Of a stretch of 64,000 bases of DNA, positions 20,508 to 61,224 are shown in pieces. Each line of letters opens with the position of its first letter. Positions within the stretch are counted from its first letter, which is position 1. The DNA comes from Vitrella brassicaformis CCMP3155 (taxonomy: Eukaryota; Protista; Chromerida): contig CDMY01000603.1 of the NCBI GenBank assembly GCA_001179505.1, forward strand, positions 186,001 to 250,000, written 5' to 3'. Under the pieces are notes generated by a model. It was not told where the DNA came from. It saw only the letters and a list, made by a program, of their open reading frames with translations, and did not search any database. The position numbers and the translations under genes were made by a program.

Positions 20508-23500
20508 TTATTCGTCGATCATCTCGACTTCTGTGACGGCCGGTGGTGCGACGGTGGGGTCGGGCGGGTAGCGGAAGAGCCAGTCACGGAACCTCTCCAG
20601 CTCTGCCAGGTGCTCGTCCAGACGAGCCTGCCCGCCCTTGACCAACTCGTTGCCCCGCTGGATCAAACCAGACTGAAGACAGACACACAACATAAACACA
20701 GAGGGGGAGAGCTGGTGCGGGTGAAGGGGCGGGTGGGGGCGAATGTACCTTGGCGCAGAATCTTTGCACGAGTGTGGCGCGGTGGACCCGCATCTCCTCG
20801 TACTCGCGGACAGCCGCCGGCAGGAGGGCGTTCATCTCTGTGAAGCACATCGACATCGCAGCACATCAACTCAGCTAGCTCACCATCAACAGCACAGCAC
20901 AGCAAGGAAAGCCGCCCGCCTCACTCACATAACATACACAAGAGAGAGCGTCCCAGTACCTGCCGACTGGACCTTGTCAGCTCCGATGTCAGCGATGATC
21001 TTGTCGATGGCCGCAGTGAGGCAGTGCACGTCCTGATTGGTCAGATCGACACACCGACCAACACACACAACACGCCGTGTGTGTGTGTGTGTGTGCGACT
21101 CGGTCGCTTGGCTTGCCTCAAAGGTCTGGTTGGCGCCCTGGCCTGGATCAGGGTGGGGGGCGTGCGCAGCGTCACCCAGCAGCACCACACGACCCTACGC
21201 ACACACACGCGCACACACATTGAAAGACAGGTGCAATGCAGACACATCACACAGCAGACACAAGACACAAACAAGGGCATACAGACTTACGGAGGGTGTG
21301 CTCCACTGCTTGAGTGCCTTCCTCGCGTAGATGCCTCTCTGGTAGATGCGGCTGGCGGGGGTGGCCTTGACGCAAGCCACGATGTCGGCCACCTGACGCG
21401 GCACCTCCTCGCCCTTCTCGCCACCCCCTCCAGCTCCAGCAGCACCGCCACCGCCACCGCCACCGCCCCCTCCACCACGTGTGAGGTAGGCGATGACCTC
21501 CTCCTTCAGCCCCGCCGCACCGATCTTGCCGCGGCCGTCGAAGTGCCACGCCTCCACACGCACCTGCACATTGACACACACACAGACATACACACACAGA
21601 CATACATTGTGGTGTGGTGGGGTGGGCTGGGCTGGGATGGGTAACAGACCTGCCAGAAGGTTTGGCCGTGTCCGCATGGGCACATGATGCAGCTGAGCGG
21701 CGGGTCCTCGACGACCAGCTTGACCAGCTCGTGGGGGGCGTGCACCGGCTTGGTGGGGGAAACGATCGACTGCACACACGAAAATTTCGCCACGTGCGAG
21801 TGCGTGTGAGAGTGTGTGTGAGAGTGTGTGTGTCTGTGTCTGTGTCTGTGTGTTGGGGGAGGGGGAGGGGGGGAAGGTGCTCACGGATGTATCGACGATG
21901 GCGTTCCAGTTCTTCTGGCCTGTTGGATGCATTGCATTCGATGGCATGACATGGCTGGGGAGAGAGATGCAAAGCAAAGCAGCGCATACGTACCGAAGAA
22001 TATGGGTGAGTCTTCCTCTGGCGGCAGCCCCGTGATGCGCCTGCGCAGCGTCGAGAAGGCGCCGTCAGCCACCACCACCAAGTGGGCCCTGGTTGAGAGA
22101 CAAGATACACACACGCAACTCACTCACCCTTGACACACAAAACACTGTTTGTGTACTTGCCTGACGGTGTAAGTGTCAGGCTGCCCCTGGAAGCGCACAG
22201 TGACCTCGGCGCCCTCCTCTGTGAAGTCCCGCCCGCCGTGTGAGCAGTGGATGGCCTCCTTCGGACACAGAGACGCCAGGTGGTTCTGATGCACCCACCG
22301 GCCCCAAACGAAGGACACACACATGATGCCAGGCCATGCTGCCCCATCCCATACCCACACACAGGCACAGGCATGGCACCTGAGCGTGTGTCCAGGGGAT
22401 GATGACCGAGGCTGACTGGTACTGCTGCTCGAACAGGCCAAAGTCGCGAGAAGAGGCCGTCTCCTGAAGGAAGGCACAGACACACAACACGCACGAGCAC
22501 AGAGAGGGAAACACAACCAACAGGCGTCTGTCTGTGTGCGTCGGTCGCTCCCTGTGTGTGTGTGTGTGTGTGTTAGACTCACTCACAGCCAGACAGACTG
22601 ACTTACCGTGCCGTCGGCCTTGCGGAGCTTGTGGACGCAGACGGGCTTGGCGCACCCCGACTTCTTGAACATCTCCACCACTTGAGGAATGGCCCTCTCT
22701 AAGGCGCGCATGCCGTTGGGGTAGCAGTGGAACACACCCTGGCCACATACACACACACACAGACAGAAACATACACAGACGCGCACAAAGGTGCAGGTGG
22801 CTCTGGTGTAGGTGGCTTGGGTCGATGGCTTGCTTACCTGCGACTGGTATCTCAGGTCAGGCGCCCTCTCAAACACGTGTGCATCCAGCCCTCGAGACCT
22901 ACACGCAACACACACAAAGACACCCATCCATCCCTCTCCCTCCCTCCCTCCCTCCGACAAGTAAGTAGTACTCTCTATTCACCTGAGGGCCGCCCCGAGA
23001 GCGAGCCCCCCCAGACCGCCCCCAATGATGGCCACCTGCACAAAGGCCGGTGCCTTCACGCCCTCGGGCACCATGACGTGCTGCGAGGGGGCGCTGTAGT
23101 AGTAGTCACTGGGGGCCGCGTCGGTCGATGGCGATGGGGCGGGGTGGTGTGGCTGTAGGTGTGCTGGTGTGGAGGGCTGGGTGGATAGGGGGAGGGAGTG
23201 GAGGTAGCTCAGCACCTCGCTCTCTGACTTCACTTCTGCGTACTTTGCCTGCACGCACACACACACACACACACACACACATGGATGGACACACATAAAG
23301 GACAAAACAGGTGTGGCTTGCCTGCAGATCGAAGAGGCTGGCGTCATGCACCTCCTGCCGCCTATCCCCCACGGCCTCCCGCACCACCACCGGCACAAAG
23401 CCGTGCTGCAGGCAGTCGGTCGCCGTGGCGCGGATGCAGCCACTCGTCGACACGCCACATATGATGAGCGTGTCCACACGGAGGGCACACAGCGAACTCG

Positions 23501-23605
23501 CCAGAGACGTCCCGAAGAAGGCGCTCGCGTAGTTCTTGACAATCACCACCTGTGCACACACACACAGGTGGCAGAGAGGAAGATGCTCACTCACTCAACG
23601 ATGTG

Positions 23606-23638
<33 letters not shown>

Positions 23639-24086
23639 TGCCTACCCACCTCTGTGGGCAGTGGCTGCAGCGCCTGCGGGAACCGTCCCAGAGGGTTGCC
23701 CTTGACGAAGCACTTGAGAGCGGGCACCTTTCGGAAGAACAGTCCGCCACTCACGCCCCTGTCGTCATACTCACTACAACGTACACACAAACGTACACAA
23801 AAGACAACCGCCATTCATTGCACTGCACTGCTTGCCTCTCTCTCTCCGGCCATGGCTTGGCTGCCTACACAGTGGTGTGGAAGACCGGCACGCCCGCCGC
23901 CCTGGCCTCCCTCAGCAGCCGCTGGCACGAGTCCAGGGCCCGCTCGGCGAGCGCCCCGGCGTACAGCGGCGATGAGGGCAGCAGGTACGCTTCCACAAAG
24001 TCGACGATGAGCAGCGCCGGACGGCTGCCCACAGGCAGATGCCCGTCGAACGCGCCCTTGTAGTTGGCTGTCAGCTCGGTGGACAT
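20508..24086 (-). CDS. Fusion: isochorismatase-family amidohydrolase (NicF / N-carbamoylsarcosine amidase-like) plus class A FAD-dependent monooxygenase
   Basis: N-part: [48 protein letters not shown], with the Asp-Lys-Cys triad intact. C-part: [46 protein letters not shown]. The junction lies within one exon (23248-22984). Confidence 0.88.
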
Positions 24087-24189
24087 CGTGATGGCGGGAA
24101 TGTGGCAGATCTGCTGCAAGCTGAGCTCGCAGGCGAAGGGGTCAATCTCTTCTCTCAGATCTGCGTCGTCTGACTCATCGATCTTGAAG

Positions 24190-24643
24190 ATGGCCGGTTG
24201 CTTTAGTCGCCTCAGGTGGTTCCCACAACATCTCTCACCATCGTCTTCCAGGGCCATCAAAGTCCCGCCACCACTGCATCGACATGCCAACAGGTTTCTC
24301 GCCACGGCAGCAGCAGCAGCACCATCAGCATCAGCAGTTGATTCATCATCACTACCACCACAAGCAGCAGGACCACAGACACAGACAGCAGCATCAGCAG
24401 CCCCGCCCCCTCCACCTCCTCCTCAGAGCGACAGTGAGTTCCTTCCCCGGCTGCGCAACATCGGCATCTTTGCGCACATCGATGCGGGCAAGACGACCAC
24501 CACCGAGAGCATCCTCTACAACGCCCAGGTCATCCACACCAGAGGGGCGGTGGACGAGGGCACCGCCGTCATGGACTTCATGGAACAGGTAACAGGCCAC
24601 TCAGAGTGGCACTCACAACACGGCAACACGTCCCCCTCTCTCT

Positions 24644-24675
<32 letters not shown>

Positions 24676-24762
24676 CTGTATTGGATATACAGGAGCGTGC
24701 GCACGGCATCACGATTCAGTCGGCGGCCACGACGTTCATCTGGCAGGACTGCAAGATCAACC

Positions 24763-24793
<31 letters not shown>

Positions 24794-25450
24794 GGCAGAG
24801 GTCGCCCGTGCTGTCCGTGTGCTCGACGGGGCGGTGGTGGTGCTCGACGGCCAGCGGGGGGTGGAGCCGCAGACGGAGAACGTCTGGCGACAGGCCAGCG
24901 AGGCCATGCTGCCGAGGGTGCTCTTTGTCAATAAGATGGACAAACCCGACGCCAACCTGGTTTGTCGAGGGGGTGGGGGGCTTGATGCCTGTGGTTGTAG
25001 TTGTGATTGAGATGTCACGGTGGCGGTGTGTTCGTGTGTTCGGTCAGGAGTACAGCGTGTCGAGTGTGTCGAGCCGGTTTGGGTGCAGGCCTGTGGTGCT
25101 GGTGGCGTCGGTGCCATTCGACAGTGGCCCTGTCGATGCGCTCGTCGACCTGTTCGACTTTCAGGTAGCCAGCCACCCACACACAGGACAGGACCTTCCT
25201 TCTCTGTGGTGTGATGTATGTCTGTCTGTCTGTCTGTCTGTCACACAGGCGTACCGTTATGAGGCCACAGGGGTGCTGAATCGCACCAGGAGGGCGGACA
25301 CACCATTGCCCAAGCAGTGGGACACCTCACAGCAGATTCCAGACGCACTGGCGCCATTCAAGATCACACAAATAGCGCTGCAGGTGAGATGAGAGAGTGG
25401 GCGAGAGGGAGAGACACTGAGCGGGGGCTCATATCCTCACCTGTGTGTGT

Positions 25451-54204: not shown

Positions 54205-55443
54205 CGCGGCCCAGCAAATCGCAGACGATGTGCTCACTCGGCGACTAAGAGGCGCGAGAGATTTCGCCGGAACTCGGGCGGCGGGAAAACAGGGGCCGAC
54301 GCATGCATTTTGATCGGATCGCACCAATCACATTTGACGTCCCCAGATCGATTGCTGTGTGTCTGGGATAGAGCAGCAGGGATCCGCGTGTGACATGTGT
54401 GCGTCTGGCAGTGCGACGAAAAGGGCGCGCAGATTTGGCCAGCCCGGCGTCCTGGCCGTTCAGATTCACTTCGCCTGTCGTCCTGCCATATCTGTCTGCG
54501 CAACACGCGGGAGTGAGTACCTTCGCTACGGCTCCACACGGCAGCCTCCTGGCGGGATGCTGCATAGAACAAGAGAATGGACAGGAGTTTCATGGTGATC
54601 TACCCATCTGTGGGGTGTGTGTGTTGTCGCCCACCCTGAGCAAGCCCGTCAGCCAGCAACGCGAGGGACAGAAGCGACGAAACCATACGCAGCGCCATAA
54701 TGTATTCGCTCGCGAGGGTCCCCGACACCCTCCGCAAAACCGCTGTGCAATATCCTGGCCGGCCACACCACGCCAGGGGATGAGGGGTCTGTCGTCCTCC
54801 ACTGTTATTAAACACACTGTGGCAGCCGCACACGGTGTGGCCAGGGGGGAGGGGACGTGACCGGCAGATTCACGTCCCTGTCTCTGCCGTTCACGTCCCT
54901 GTCCCTTCTTTGCTTTTTTCTCTAGTGGCAGTGGCAGCGCTTAGGCGCCGCCATGCAGCAAGTCGCTCGCTGGTGAGTGTCAACTAAGTCATCACAGCGG
55001 AGACCACGCGCAAAAAACTCTCTGTTCTGTGCAGGAGCGGGCACGACGAGCCGCGTTTGGGCGGTGCACTCCAGTTTTCAGATGGAGGCGGCAGTCTGCA
55101 TGGTCAGACCGAATGACTGCATTATTTATGGCACTCACTCACTGATCCGTTCCGTGTCGCGTGTGTTCTTCTTCCACACCATGCAGCACATGGACTCACA
55201 CACAACACAAGTGTATGTCGTAGTGAGTGAGAAGGAGCCATGCAGACAGGACAGGGGCACACTTGGTGACCCACACGCCACGGCCACCAAGGCAGTGGGG
55301 TCAGACGAGAACCAGCGGCCCATATCGATACAGACACACACAGAATGAATGGCACACGAAAAACTGTGAGTGACTTCCTCTCTGCCAACTCTCTTCAAGA
55401 CACACACAGACAGACAAAGCTCTCGCTTAAACGATCAAGGAAC

Positions 55444-55743
55444 NNNNNNNNNNNNNNNNNNNNNNNNNNNNNNNNNNNNNNNNNNNNNNNNNNNNNNNNN
55501 NNNNNNNNNNNNNNNNNNNNNNNNNNNNNNNNNNNNNNNNNNNNNNNNNNNNNNNNNNNNNNNNNNNNNNNNNNNNNNNNNNNNNNNNNNNNNNNNNNNN
55601 NNNNNNNNNNNNNNNNNNNNNNNNNNNNNNNNNNNNNNNNNNNNNNNNNNNNNNNNNNNNNNNNNNNNNNNNNNNNNNNNNNNNNNNNNNNNNNNNNNNN
55701 NNNNNNNNNNNNNNNNNNNNNNNNNNNNNNNNNNNNNNNNNNN
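55444..55743. other. Assembly gap (300 N) followed by a poly-C tract
   Basis: N run. Confidence 0.99.
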
Positions 55744-55800
55744 CCCCCCCCCCCCCCCCCAACACACACACGAAATCTCTGCCGGCCAACACTCGTTAGT

Positions 55801-58800
55801 TCACTGTTTGGCGGCCTCGTCGCCACCGTCGTCTTCGGCCAGGTCATTGAGGCTGGGCTGCCCCTCAGTGTCGGGGAACTTGTTGATCCACCCCTTGAAC
55901 GACACCAGCAGCTCGCTGAGCTTCTTTCCTGACACGCGACGACCCTCACGCTCGGCGTCGCCCACCTGACACACACACACACACACACACACGATGTTTC
56001 AACGGTGGGTGTGGGGGACAGTGAGAGAAAGACGTTACCATGGTAGAGAACTGCTGGACGACGGACGCCCTGGGCACACGGACCTTCTCGTAGGCAGCCA
56101 CGGCGTCGGGCAGCCGATGCAGCCACGTGCCGTCACCACCTGCGGTGCACACAGACACACACACACACACACACACACATGACGCTTGATCGACGATTCA
56201 GTGCACGGCAGTAGGCAATACCGTGTTTCTCTCTCAGTTTGCCGATTTCGTCCACCAGCACGGCGACGTCCTCAAACACCTGGTTGGCCCCCTGCCCGGC
56301 CAATGGGTGCGGCGCGTGGGCCGAATCGCCCAGCAGCACCACACGACCCTGCACACACACACACACACAGAGGCATCCTTGCGCCACTCTGCCATTCTGC
56401 GTGTCTGAGCGGCTTGTTCACCCTGGGCGAGCTCCACTTGTCGATGGCGTCTCGCGAGAACATGTGCCGCTCGAAGATCTGCTCCTCAGGCGTGGCACTG
56501 ATGGCCGCCATGATGTCGCTGTGCTTGCTGCTGTAGTCCGCTCCACCAGTGCCGTCAAGCCGGCCCGTCTTGACGTAGTTGAGGAGCCGCTGCCGCACCC
56601 CCTGACGGCCAATGGCGCTGCGGCCGGGGCGGGAGGCATCGGGGGCGGGGAGGCGCAGCTGCGCACAACACACACATGCAGATAGATAGATGCCCCCACA
56701 CACACAGAGAGGGAGGGAGATACATCCATCCGTGTGACGAAGAGGGCAGAGGGGCGTGTGGGGCGTACGTACGAGCCAAAAGGTGAGACCCGAGCCGGCG
56801 TCGACAAGGAATGCCGAGAGGAAGGGTGTGTTGCTGTCGACCTTGACCACCTCATGGTCGCCATGCACCCTCTCACCAACGCTCTGATCACACACACACA
56901 CGCGCGCCCACGTAGATCTTTGTCTCTTTCGTAGCTCTCCTCTCTCTCTCTCTGTCCACCGCGTGGCTGACCTCAGTGGGGATCATGGCATTGTATGAGA
57001 TGTTCTTGTAGTAGTGCGGCGGGTCCTGCACAAGCACCGACGCCGCAAACGGGTTCAGGCCGCCACCTTTGCCCCCAGCCGCCGCCATCTCCTCAGGGGT
57101 GCTCGCAGCCGTCTGCTGCTGCTGCTGCTGGCTGCGCGATTGCGCCACGATGTGCGGGCGGAGAGCTGAGAAGGAGCCGTCAGCTGCGACCACTAGAGAC
57201 GCCCTGTAAGGTAGCCGCCGCACCACCACACACAAGACAAGACAAGACAAGACACACATGGAGTGTTTTGTGAGTGAATGGTGTGCTGGATGTTGAGGGT
57301 CGGATCATGGTGTGTGTGATGTCCTTACTTGACGTGGTAGTCGTCGGGCCGTCCTTCGAAGAGCATACACACGTCCTCTTCGGTCTCGGTCCATCCGCGG
57401 GCGCCATGGCCGCAGTGCACCACATCCGACGGCACGTGAGACGCGAAGGTGTTCTGAGCGGCTGTCCACCGCATCATGACACACGGGGCGCCGAACTTGT
57501 CGACGTACTGATCGCGCTTCAACGCAGTGCGCGTCTCCTGACCAACACAGCCACCACAGCCGGAAAGGGGCATGTGCGTGGGGGGCATGTGCGTGGGGGG
57601 TGGGGTTGTTTATGCTTACCGGCAATTCGTCTTTGCGTACGACCAGCTGTGAGGAGGGGCAGAAAACGCCGGTCTGCTCGAACTCGTCGGCGATGTCGCG
57701 GTAGGCCATGCGGATGGCCTTGATGCCGTTGGCGTCGGCCATGAAGATACCCTGGCAGGGTGTGGTACACACAACACACACACACACACACACGCACGCA
57801 CGCACACGCACACATAGCAGACAGACATCCACGCCGACGTGCAAGGATGGTAGGATGGTGTGATTTGTTCGTTTCGTGCCTGTGATGCATTTCTCAACGC
57901 AGGTGCGCGCTCAAACACATGGGCATCGATACCGCGCTTCCTATAATCGGCAAACACCACACCACACACACAATGCACTGCAGTGCAGCCACATCCACCC
58001 CTATTATGCTCAGTTTCTCACCTGAGTGCGGCGCACAGCAGGAGCCCCCCCAGTCCCCCGCCAGCGATGGCCACCTGCACCCTCTCGGGGATGCGCCGGC
58101 CGCTCTCCACATCGCGGCCGCTCTCACCCCACTGCCGGCTCACTGACCTGAGACGCAAATCATCAGGAATGGACGTCTCGCACGCCTAAAACATGAAAGA
58201 AGGAGAGAGAGAGAGGGGGGGAGGGAGGGAGGGATGGATGAGTGTGTCGGCCTGTGTGTGAAGGGAAGTGAATGTGGGCGTCTGTCGTCGGGTGACTGAC
58301 CTTGAGTATGGCGGGAAGCGACCACTCCACCGCCTGTGTGGGCTGGGCGATCTCTTTCTCGGCAGCCGAGCTGCCGCACGCGTGACTGAGGGCCTCGTCG
58401 AGCACAGCCCCCAATTGGCGGGGGACGGGCAGCCAGTCGCCCTCACCCACGGATGCGCTGTCGCCCTCCCGCTGCTGCTGCGACATGTAGACGGTCACTT
58501 CCCTGCAGACACACCACCACCTGGGTCTGTCTGAGTGTCTGTGCGGTGTCTGTGTGTGTCGGTGTGCTGACTGTGGCAGAGATGCGGTTGATGTCAAGAA
58601 GGCCTGCTCGGTGTGGGCGGGGTCGAGAGCGACGGCGCCGCCGCACGATGACAGAAATCCCTGAAGCATGAAGACGACGACAGACACACGTATTTATTGC
58701 GGGGTGCTGTGCTGTGCTGTGCTGTGTCTGTGTTGTGTGTGCGGCTCGCCGGACCTTCAGGAGCGCCTCGGCAACATATGGGCAGCGATGCAGACTGATC

Positions 58801-61224
58801 AGGCAGGGTGAGAGAACACACCCACCGCACATTTGGTGATAACAGCATGTGACTCACCCTCCCACTCACCCACCTCTCCGCGTCTGCCCCCTTCTGCGAA
58901 GGGATGACAGCGAATATATCCAGCCGCTGGATGACAGGCTCACCCGTCAGAGCATCAACCTCCACCTGACACACACCACACCACACACAGGATGATGATG
59001 ACACACAGCAAAATGCAAGCAATGTGCCCATCCATCCCATTCATCCGCAGACGGACCATCCATCCACGACTCACCTACCTCTGCGGCAGCAGCCACGTCA
59101 CGCCCTGCCATCTGTGCCGACTTGACAGCCACGCCCCTCTTGCGCCACCGGTTGTCACCGTTGTGCTTGTCAACCGCCGCACACCGGTCGCCCCATCCTA
59201 TAGAAGCCTTCAGCCGCTCAACCGCCGCACCCTCAGCGCACCCCGCTGCCATCGCCACAGAGCCGCCAAGCTTGGCACCGGTGAGTGAGATCTGCTGCCA
59301 TTGGTGGCCTTGTTGCTGTGCCATGATGGAGATCGACGGGAGGGGCGGTGTGGGGGTGAGTGAGAGGGATGGCAGGACGGCGGTGATGAATCGTGGGGAG
59401 GGGGCGGCGAGGTGTGTGTCGTCGTAGGAGCCGCGGGAGACCTCCCCGCCCAGCAGCACCAGGAACTTGAACAGCAGCGCCTGAGTGCCGCTGGGGACCT
59501 GACCGCTCATCTGACATCCATCCCAGTAGCAGGCCACACACACATCATTCAATCACATCCATCCATCCATCCACCACACCTGACCTGTGCGTTGGCGATC
59601 TTCAGCGCTTCCCATGCAGTCTCCTCGGTCAGCCCATACCCCTGCAGGAACTCCTCCACCCGCCCGAGCCGCCCCATCCCACCCTCCCAGCTCGCACACA
59701 CCCGCACTTCACGCAGCTGCCGCGTCACCGCATCCAATGCTGCCCAGCAACACACGCTGCCCACCGGCCGCCCCGTCCGCACCGGCGATGCCGTTCTGTA
59801 GGCACGATAGAGCGACTGTGCGGCGTCGATCGGCTCTGGCAGCGGCAGGGTGACCGACACGAGCAGGTAGTCGCTCCATTTGATGGTCTTGTTGTTGGGG
59901 TAGCCGATTCGGTCGAGGAAGGCCTCGATGGGCAGGGATGTCGGCTGTGGCTGTGGGTGTTGCTGCTCGCCGGATGACGACAGGTCGGCTGTGGTGTAGA
60001 ACTGCACGGATGCCTGCCATGTGACGAGAGCGGGAAGCAGGTCGGCGGCCGCGCCGCCCCTGCTGGACCCGCTCAGCTCACGCAGCACAGCACCGCCCAC
60101 CGTAAGCACGTTCCTCAGACCTCTCGGGGCAACCACACGCAGATGGTCCGCCAGTGCGTCGAAGTGCGATGCCTTCATGTCGGCCCGGTCGTGCCGCTCG
60201 ATCGTGTCCATCACCTGCTGCAGCACCACCGACGCGCCGAAGGTGACGTGAGTCGTCTGCGAGTCGATGCCGCGCATGGCCGGCAGGTCGCCCACGGCAA
60301 TGCGCGCCTGGCTTTCGGTGAGTGAGGTGTGGTCGAACGTGCTGCTGCCGTAGAGCAGCTCGAATGAAGGGGCCGGGGTGGCGGATAGAGTGGCCTGCAG
60401 CTGCTGCATCGATGTGGGCAGGTGGACGAACGCCGGCAGGTGCTGCAGCGATGAGGATGGCGGGATGGGCGTGGGCGTGGGGCGGAGTAGTGTTTCGATG
60501 AGCGAGAGGGGCGCCTTGGTCTTGTCGGCGATGTCCTTGGCCAGAAAGGAGGTGTCGAGGGTCGCGAGAAACGACAGCGCCTTGCACAGATCCGTCGCAT
60601 CTGAGCGATAGATACGTCAACGAACGCATGCATCACGTTATGCCATGCATCCCTCCCACTACCTCCCACTCCACTACCTGACTCACCATCTCTGTCGCAC
60701 GGCACACTCGCCACCCAGTCGCGCATCGCCTCGCTGTCCATCAGCCCCTCAGCAGACGAAGCGCCACCGCTCACCAGCACCCCCGCCGCACCCACAGCAA
60801 CGGCCGCACCGACACCGCCCCATTTCTCGGCCATGGTCTGCAGCTCCGCGGGCAGGTGCTGCAGCGTGGTGATGGTGGCGCCCTGCACGGCCACTGCGGA
60901 CACCAGTCGTGTGTAAGTGGGTGTGGGAGGGGTGGTCCATCCGCCGTGAAGTCGGTCGGGGAACGACACAAGCGCCGCGAAACACTCAAACTCTGCAGCG
61001 GCAGCAGCAGCGGCAGCAGCAGAGGGACAGACAGACAGACATGCATCATCGGCACGTTGCATGCGTTTGTGTGAGTGGCAGTTATTCCACCCACCTGTGC
61101 GGCCTGTGTGTTGCAGGACATCCAGGAGCGACGCGTTGGGGTCGATGCCGGCAGAGGGGATGCGCGCCGTCTGCCCGTCCAGCTGGTACACCAGCGGACT
61201 CATCTCGCCAGTGCCGTCAGCCAT
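55801..61224 (-). CDS. Fusion: degenerate, internally deleted xanthine dehydrogenase/aldehyde oxidase-like region plus class A FAD-dependent monooxygenase
   Basis: XDH-like traces: LVYQLDG...IDPNASLLDVL, GLRNVLTVGG...DLLPALV, ALLFKFLVLL, AVDKHNGDNRWRKRGVAV, AAEVEVDALTGE...RLDI, SASVGEG. Monooxygenase: VAIAGGGLGG, VFERAP, VVAADGSFS, VLLGDSAHAPHPLAGQGANQ. Joined by the phase-0 intron 58300-58186. Confidence 0.8.

Follow-up and report, generated by a model that had tools for sequence, protein, structure and literature searches.

This locus raises the question of whether an amidase and a flavin-dependent hydroxylase form one enzyme in the chromerid Vitrella brassicaformis CCMP3155 and, if so, which catabolic route could have brought them together. 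The locus lies within a stretch of 64,000 nucleotides (GenBank assembly GCA_001179505.1, contig CDMY01000603.1, positions 186,001 to 250,000 of the forward strand), referred to here as the window, whose own numbering is used for all positions. A first-pass annotation of this DNA had proposed a maleamate amidohydrolase resembling NicF fused to a class A monooxygenase dependent on flavin adenine dinucleotide (FAD), had likened the pair to NicF and NicC of bacterial nicotinate catabolism, and had considered that the amidase might have come from bacteria. One real, transcribed gene with this two-domain architecture is present on the minus strand at positions 20508 to 24086. Sequence comparisons suggest that a coupling of hydroxylase and amidase holds up, and that the specific nicotinate pathway of NicC plus NicF finds no support beyond family resemblance.

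The window DNA is eukaryotic and GC-rich, and its introns are short and rich in (TG)n/(CA)n runs. In a hand-built model, the coding region of the fusion gene runs on the minus strand from an ATG at 24086 to a stop at 20508 and comprises 16 exons, 2166 nucleotides and 721 codons for amino acids: exons 1 to 4 at 24086-23869, 23773-23650, 23549-23322 and 23248-22983; exons 5 to 8 at 22898-22838, 22738-22607, 22463-22380 and 22285-22161; exons 9 to 12 at 22088-21994, 21919-21885, 21769-21650 and 21563-21291; and exons 13 to 16 at 21194-21117, 21032-20960, 20837-20749 and 20672-20508. All 15 introns end in an AG acceptor; 12 start with a GT donor and the other three with a GC donor (GCAAG; 23321-23249, 22160-22089 and 21116-21033), and (TG)n/(CA)n runs are present in most of them. 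Evidence of transcription was taken from contigs of two coded runs, X1 and X2, which both behave as RNA, and contigs of a further run, X3, read through introns and are evidently DNA. RNA coverage of the gene is thin and fragmentary. The X1 and X2 contigs splice exactly at the model boundaries of six introns, those between exons 2/3, 6/7, 7/8, 8/9, 9/10 and 10/11, of which the 8/9 splice confirms the GC-AG intron at 22160-22089. Support for the other introns of the model comes from gap-free homology and from a paralogue. This group includes the exon 3/4 (GC-AG) and exon 4/5 splices, which rest on homology without spliced reads: the stretch FDLQAKYAEV across exons 3 and 4 is identical in a standalone homologue, P0018, and the exon 4/5 boundary (...AALR /.RG.DAHVFE) is also present in the paralogue.

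The two domains meet within exon 4 (22983..23248), which encodes, in one open frame, the last amidase helix (AKYAEV...SYLHSL), an inter-domain linker and the first part of the flavin domain. This exon contributes the final 18 amidase residues, a 48-residue linker rich in Pro, Ser, His and Thr (residues 209-256, 23051..23194), and the dinucleotide-binding motif GGGLGG. Because the amidase end, the linker and GGGLGG share a single open exon, the fusion is not a product of exon joining. An RNA-type contig of 252 nucleotides at 22987-23238 lies wholly within exon 4 and spans the amidase end, the linker and GxGxxG. The first-pass annotation had placed the passage from linker to GxGxxG in one exon, as the open frame confirms, and expression of the junction exon, on which it had made its proposal depend, is found in this contig. 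Standalone homologues of the amidase stop at about residue 208, and a homologue search with exon 4 found no protein.

A gene resembling translation elongation factor G (EF-G) lies head to head with the fusion gene at about 24064-25400 on the plus strand, with a 5' region that extends into the open frame preceding the ATG at 24086. Given this overlap, the two genes probably have a very short common bidirectional promoter region.

The amidase domain, residues 1-208 (23195..24086), is encoded by exons 1 to 3 and the first 54 nucleotides of exon 4, and is assigned to the isochorismatase-like cysteine hydrolases. Searches of Pfam, NCBIfam and the PDB were run on exon pieces and not on the whole spliced protein. 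In Pfam, exon 3 matched PF00857 (isochorismatase) at 70.7 bits, and exon 1, taken by itself, fell just short of the cut-off with 25.7 bits. Residues 1-209 can be aligned over their whole length with standalone PF00857 proteins of about 210 amino acids, at 60-65% identity over 205-212 amino acids (58-65% for the standalone proteins overall, most of them bacterial); no gap falls at the three exon junctions, and the homologues end exactly where the linker starts. The predicted catalytic residues are Asp29 (in LLIVDF, 24000..24002), Lys119 (in IVKNYAS, 23535..23537) and the nucleophile Cys152 (in STSGCIRA, 23436..23438). They align with D51, with K144 (through the proxy P0036 described below) and with C177 of the Arthrobacter N-carbamoylsarcosine amidase 1nba, which we take to be its catalytic residues, and Cys152 also aligns with the TSGC of 26st, 4l07 and 3ot4. 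The isochorismatase-family domain with an intact Asp/Lys/Cys triad described in the first-pass annotation is thus borne out, and the motifs quoted there are all present in the model.

Comparison with structures in the PDB brings the amidase together with two groups of characterized enzymes. Exon 3 scored 80 bits with the N-carbamoylsarcosine amidohydrolase 26st and 58 bits with the N-carbamoylsarcosine amidohydrolase 1nba, 65 bits with 4l07 (deposited as a hydrolase of the isochorismatase family) and 63 bits with 3ot4/3uao (deposited as a putative isochorismatase); for exon 1 the top score, 29 bits, was to N-carbamoylsarcosine amidase. We take 3ot4/3uao to be NicF, the maleamate amidohydrolase of Bordetella, and 4l07/4l08 to be the maleamate amidase Ami of Pseudomonas putida S16. 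P0036, a protein 65% identical to the Vitrella domain, was used as its full-length proxy and scored 161 bits with 26st and 151 bits with 1nba, compared with 124 bits for 3ot4/3uao and 105 bits for 4l07; RutB and biuret hydrolase were also among its PDB matches. By these scores NicF does not appear to be the nearest characterized relative: the ranking of chains by exon 3 is mixed, and the proxy favours the carbamoylsarcosine amidases. The amidase appears to belong to a clade that holds both N-carbamoylsarcosine amidase and NicF and to lie, if anything, nearer to the former. Maleamate and N-carbamoylsarcosine are near-isosteric, each with a primary amide three atoms from a carboxylate. Nicotinamidase was rejected as the identity of the domain, as nicotinamidase and pyrazinamidase reach at most 48 bits with P0036 against 105-161 bits for this clade.

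The class A (group A) FAD monooxygenase domain occupies residues 257-721 (20511..23050), from the end of exon 4 to exon 16, with a Gly-rich insert in exon 12. All three fingerprints of the class are present in canonical order: GxGxxG, the FAD-binding motif, read from the sequence as GGGLGG at residue 266 (23006..23023); the DG motif, read as ADGAFSTLR at residue 420 in exon 9 (22043..22069), with weak Pfam SE and NCBIfam hits; and the GD motif, LLGDAAH at residue 592 in exon 13 (21117..21194), with matches in Pfam to PF01494 (FAD_binding_3), in NCBIfam to HpxO, PRK06753 and salicylate monooxygenase, and in the PDB to class A enzymes. Of the PDB matches of exon 13, tropone monooxygenase (23 bits) and salicylate hydroxylase (20.9 bits) rank ahead of HspB and NicC, the two NicC entries reaching 16.7 bits (8twf) and 14.5 bits (5eow). 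These scores give NicC no precedence over other class A subfamilies as a relative of the module. When the full-length module was compared by phmmer with a panel of 12 sequences, class A enzymes were matched at E-values of 1e-23 to 1e-6; the top match was a Burkholderia protein annotated as salicylate hydroxylase (73 bits), whose gene lies outside a nic cluster, followed by PhzS-type fusions (45-60 bits), HpxO (44 bits) and the PnpA/HspB type (below 20 bits). The module is best described as a divergent one that is probably related to the salicylate-hydroxylase/PhzS/HpxO group.

Closer placement of the module was sought in several collections. Exons 6, 8, 11 and 12 matched no Pfam or NCBIfam family; exon 12 met only generic FAD_binding_3 clusters in Atlas, with scores of at most 0.82 that provide a lead only, and nothing meaningful among plasmids. 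Matches of exon 6 to designed helical repeat proteins in the PDB were dismissed as spurious. Searches with exons 13-14 returned generic GD-motif matches only, a scan of Joint Genome Institute (JGI) metagenomes with a GD-motif alignment gave six loci, none related beyond the motif, and a plasmid search for named NicC found none. NicC and HxnX are defined by the substrate pair His211/Tyr215 in P. putida numbering (PMC9304392). No H-x-x-x-Y is evident in exon 11 when it is inspected by eye, without alignment to NicC. Zeaxanthin epoxidase was rejected as an identity: no FHA domain is seen in the model, and the GD motif here reads GQGAN. In zeaxanthin epoxidase it presumably reads GQGG.

The flavin module has a paralogue within the window, 32 kilobases (kb) away, at 55801..58083 on the minus strand, which is 37% identical over 480 amino acids and has five intron positions in common with it. 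The paralogue belongs to a second fusion gene (55801-61224, minus strand), in which it follows an N-terminal molybdopterin-dehydrogenase FAD-binding domain (PF00941, 51 bits) and in which other exons are merged relative to the amidase fusion gene. The common intron positions imply that the flavin module was duplicated as genomic DNA within the lineage, where it has come to be fused with two unlike partners. Shortly after the stop codon of the second gene, at about 55440-55780, a run of N marks an assembly gap.

Relatives of the amidase domain are numerous. An exhaustive search with exon 3 gave 2919 relatives, none identical, and a word-based search returned thousands of proteins of about 210 amino acids with 70-80% identity in exon 3, several of them labelled by their source as maleamate amidohydrolase or nicotinamidase-related amidase. 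In two trees, built without characterized enzymes, the Vitrella amidase sits in a well-supported clade (98/86 and 99/94) together with five sequences on bacterial-looking metagenomic contigs and a four-member group that includes P0018; this clade is surrounded by sequences from Gammaproteobacteria (Steroidobacteraceae) and Actinomycetota. Because the domain branches inside a mostly bacterial clade, it was probably acquired from bacteria by transfer, as the first-pass annotation had thought possible, and the three spliceosomal introns within it show that it is not contamination. We infer the direction of transfer from how widely the relatives are spread among bacteria and from conserved operons. 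P0018 (loci L001/L002) is a standalone, intron-free homologue of 213 amino acids, 65% identical to the Vitrella domain, on a eukaryotic contig where its neighbours are a Brr2-type helicase, a protein kinase, a GH31 glycosidase and a peroxidase; it is a second eukaryotic lineage with a predicted amidase of bacterial type.

To place the amidase in its bacterial setting, neighbours within 8 kb were counted at 49 bacterial loci with full-length amidase identities of 49-62%. Class III coenzyme A (CoA) transferase was present at 26 of the 49 loci, a protein resembling hydroxymethylglutaryl-CoA (HMG-CoA) lyase at 22, hydantoinases A and B at 18, a maleate-isomerase-like protein at five and a class A flavin monooxygenase at four; no canonical nic cluster was found among the 49. 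In the tree, the Vitrella domain branches with relatives of the hydantoinase/CoA-transferase type and not with those of the monooxygenase type. A conserved cluster of hydantoinase B, hydantoinase A, HMG-CoA-lyase-like protein, CoA-transferase III and amidase (L022-L048, L060, L068; L004, L007) was observed in Steroidobacteraceae and other Gammaproteobacteria, and the same cluster, rearranged, in Nonomuraea, Streptosporangium, Ornithinimicrobium and other Actinomycetota, where the order is CoA-transferase, hydantoinase A, hydantoinase B and, directly after it, amidase. The amidase of this cluster may follow an ATP-dependent step in which a cyclic amide is opened. At four actinobacterial loci (L041, L063, L040 and L038), a monooxygenase gene, a maleate-isomerase-like gene and the amidase gene occur in series. 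The operon of Nocardioides gilvus (L041) encodes a tandem carbon-nitrogen hydrolase, a fusion of FAD_binding_3 with a phosphoenolpyruvate (PEP) mutase/isocitrate-lyase-family domain, a maleate-isomerase-like protein, the amidase and an alpha/beta hydrolase; the fusion in it (L041:4712-6868, plus strand), immediately upstream of the maleate-isomerase-like gene, is a class A FAD monooxygenase of 718 amino acids joined to a domain of the PEP-mutase/isocitrate-lyase family.

When long proteins were searched with the P0165 amidase domain, the two enzyme kinds proved to have been joined elsewhere. Fusions of FAD_binding_3 to the amidase are present in the dinoflagellates Polykrikos kofoidii (P0165) and Alexandrium margalefii (P0278) and in unassigned transcripts (P0277, P0279-81, P0285-87), and triple fusions of monooxygenase, amidase and an Amdase-like domain were also recovered (P0284, of 1023 amino acids, in transcripts of three runs, L018-L020; and P0291). 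The latter transcripts encode chains of 911-1023 amino acids in which the monooxygenase, the amidase and the maleate-isomerase-like domain would represent three pathway steps per chain, and the P0284 and P0291 contigs showed no dinoflagellate spliced leader. Fusions of amidase and Amdase occur as well, and in one of these, P0283, the best match to the Amdase-type domain, along its whole length, is maleate isomerase (2xec/2xed). Dinoflagellates also have tandem amidases, one of which, from Durusdinium, bears the source label maleamate amidohydrolase; among these tandem proteins (P0121, P0270-P0276, P0273, P0295), which include one from Durusdinium trenchii, one form carries an additional class II aminoacyl-tRNA-synthetase domain. 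In bacteria, the fusion partners of the amidase are Aconitase_C, an HMG-lyase-like domain, CoA-transferase, hydantoinase B and an F420-type oxidoreductase, and a fusion of alpha/beta hydrolase and amidase is named N-formylmaleamate deformylase by its source. The Amdase, Aconitase_C and alpha/beta-hydrolase fusions each tie this amidase family to maleate.

The Vitrella fusion is distinct from those of the other protists. Their amidases form one clade that excludes Vitrella (97/94 and 99/93 in two trees), and forcing Vitrella into this clade costs 87 log-likelihood units (approximately unbiased (AU) test, p = 8.3e-5, for a group defined after the tree was seen). Their flavin domains fall into at least two subfamilies by PDB matches, one PnpA/HspB-like and one PhzS-like with tropone monooxygenase and NicC next. 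The separate amidase clade, together with a reversed domain order and weak flavin similarity, indicates that the Vitrella fusion is independent. Independent fusions in both orders and with different hydroxylase subfamilies are good Rosetta-stone evidence of a functional link, and for the protist clade at least, the isomerase partners suggest a product of the maleate type. The amidase-first order of Vitrella was not found in the long-protein fusion search or in the junction-exon search. A literature search found no description of an amidase-monooxygenase fusion, and the chromerid genome paper makes no mention of one; public transcriptomes contain fusions in the reverse order that have gone without comment. 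The fusion gene itself is not a new enzyme kind.

The explanation favoured here, tentatively and at a little under an even chance, is that the protein is a bifunctional enzyme whose two domains serve one nitrogen-scavenging catabolic route. The N-terminal Cys-Lys-Asp amidohydrolase would release ammonia from a small amide or carbamoyl acid with its amide three atoms from a carboxylate, such as maleamate or a near-isosteric compound, for example an N-carbamoyl amino acid. The C-terminal hydroxylase, dependent on NAD(P)H and FAD, would act on an aromatic or N-heteroaromatic ring and prepare it for cleavage, and the amidase would free nitrogen from the opened product, in steps that need not be consecutive. 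In this history, the amidase would have come from bacteria, then gained three introns, and then been joined to the lineage-specific flavin module. The architecture is certain; what the two domains act on, whether their activities are coupled and which way the transfer went are points that we infer. Maleamate is the leading candidate amide because of the isomerase and hydroxylase partners found across the family, but it is not secured, since the nearest relatives lie in a different, uncharacterized cluster and the scores are nearer to carbamoylsarcosine amidases. Several observations weigh against the bifunctional reading. Fused domains need not act in one pathway, and the 64-kb window yielded neither a ring-cleaving dioxygenase nor a deformylase, maleate isomerase or hydrolase, so that the fused hydroxylase is the only partner from the 2,5-dihydroxypyridine pathway present there. 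The amidase clade appears nearer to the N-carbamoylsarcosine amidases than to NicF, and the nearest bacterial relatives adjoin CoA-transferase III, HMG-lyase-like and hydantoinase A/B genes, with a flavin monooxygenase at only four of 49 loci, so that the ancestral amidase substrate may not have been maleamate. The flavin domain has no close relative in the plasmid, JGI metagenome and homologue collections searched, which makes its substrate class a guess.

The bacterial clusters bear on an unlikely alternative, in which the amidase keeps its ancestral job on a carbamoyl or amide acid produced by ATP-dependent ring opening of the hydantoinase or lactamase type (an acid resembling N-carbamoylsarcosine and derived, for instance, from creatinine or some other cyclic amide), or in which the flavin module opens a ring oxidatively, like MHPCO or RutA, and passes an acyclic ureide or amide straight to the amidase in consecutive steps. 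Residence of the closest relatives within clusters of hydantoinase A/B, HMG-lyase-like protein, CoA-transferase III and amidase is in its favour, as are the top PDB scores to N-carbamoylsarcosine amidases; RutB and biuret hydrolase, moreover, are isochorismatase-like amidases that act on ring-opened nitrogen compounds. However, hydantoinase, CoA-transferase and lyase genes were not noticed beside the Vitrella gene, the known creatinine route has no need of a class A hydroxylase, and maleate-isomerase-like domains have joined this amidase repeatedly, which suggests a product of the maleate type. In the strict NicF plus NicC assignment, 6-hydroxynicotinate is converted to 2,5-dihydroxypyridine and, later in the aerobic nicotinate pathway, maleamate to maleate. 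The amidase does share one clade with 3ot4/3uao, many of its relatives are labelled maleamate amidohydrolase, and the protist fusions add maleate-isomerase-like domains and flavin domains matching HspB and NicC, which supports this type of pathway in protists generally. The assignment is nevertheless distinctly unlikely for Vitrella: NicC ranks below tropone monooxygenase and salicylate hydroxylase on the sole scoring exon, the remaining flavin exons match no family, no H-x-x-x-Y is visible by eye in the expected stretch, and the amidase is nearer to the carbamoylsarcosine amidases, with its nearest relatives outside nic clusters. What stands of the first-pass annotation is therefore a class A FAD monooxygenase and an amidase that shares a clade with NicF, with higher proxy scores to the carbamoylsarcosine amidases; its pairing of the two as a nicotinate module is not supported, as the amidase relatives lie in hydantoinase/CoA-transferase clusters and the flavin module is not placed with NicC, and its Rosetta-stone argument gains from the independent protist fusions and from the few actinobacterial operons that pair both enzyme kinds.

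Two further explanations have little to recommend them. An amidase acting on aromatic-amide-type substrates (nicotinamide, salicylamide, a benzamide type or phenazine-carboxamide) would agree with the presence of decarboxylative hydroxylases among the named relatives of the flavin module and the PhzS-type fusions, and with that of nicotinamidases in the isochorismatase superfamily, but it is very improbable given that the amidase groups with a small-aliphatic-amide clade, at the scores given above for P0036, and that fusion partners elsewhere indicate maleate. A lack of functional coupling is also very improbable, whether by neutral or accidental fusion or because the model merges separate products (for example through internal initiation or polyadenylation). 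The absence of a spliced read at the exon 3/4 and 4/5 junctions, the low RNA coverage and the failure of the junction-exon search to find a protein with such a junction would allow it; on the other side, both domain ends lie in one exon and one stop-free frame spanned by an RNA-type contig, the catalytic motifs of both halves are intact, and the enzyme pair has been fused independently at least twice more.

If the bifunctional reading is extended beyond Vitrella, chromerids and dinoflagellates might possess an undescribed, partly bacteria-derived route that draws nitrogen from pyridine-type or other rings through a maleamate-like intermediate. Selection for coupling would then have been strong enough to fuse a ring hydroxylase and an amidase at least three times independently, in both orders and with three hydroxylase subfamilies, and the xanthine-dehydrogenase-like second partner of the Vitrella module would hint at a modular toolkit for N-heterocycles. 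This broader picture is speculative, and we consider it possible but doubtful. For eukaryotic nicotinate breakdown, the complete pathway has been worked out only in ascomycete fungi, which do so without a NicF-type amidase (PMC9304392). Repeated fusion of a hydroxylase to a maleamate or carbamoyl-acid amidase in several alveolate algae is a concrete, testable lead to a pathway by which protists of reefs and plankton, living where dissolved organic nitrogen matters, may scavenge nitrogen. It is also a clean case of convergent gene fusion, and it points to a widespread bacterial cluster of uncharacterized function that contains hydantoinase A/B, an HMG-lyase-like protein, CoA-transferase III and the amidase.

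Among known systems, the N-carbamoylsarcosine amidases (1nba, 26st) resemble the Vitrella amidase in fold family and in an Asp-Lys-Cys triad at aligned positions, and hydantoinase A/B genes often lie beside relatives of the Vitrella amidase, as they do in the creatinine route of N-carbamoylsarcosine amidase. Identity to these enzymes is moderate, however, and the flavin hydroxylase attached to the Vitrella domain has no place in the creatinine route as known; nor does that route need the CoA-transferase and HMG-lyase-like genes of the relatives' bacterial clusters. The NicF chains (3ot4/3uao, 4l07/4l08) share with the Vitrella amidase a clade and the motifs SAFFGT, TSGC and VGDR...H.A.LFD, and the many relatives that are labelled maleamate amidohydrolase and fused to maleate-isomerase-like domains point toward NicF, whereas the lower scores and the position of the nearest relatives outside nic and nicotine clusters set the Vitrella domain apart.

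The same mixture of likeness and difference is seen in the flavin module and in the fusion as a whole. The salicylate hydroxylase/PhzS/HpxO group provides the best matches of both the GD-motif exon and the full-length module, but the Vitrella module is very divergent and forms a lineage-specific subfamily with its paralogue. NicC (5eow, 8twf) and fungal HxnX are class A FAD monooxygenases with the same three fingerprints, and theirs is the pathway that feeds maleamate amidase; unlike them, the Vitrella module exhibits no specific similarity that could be found, and the His211/Tyr215 pair was not identified in it. The protist fusions (P0165, P0278, P0284-P0287 and P0291) are the closest parallel in architecture, being eukaryotic and combining the two enzyme kinds in one polypeptide, but they have the opposite domain order, amidases of a separate clade, and flavin domains that score at most 60 bits against the Vitrella module.

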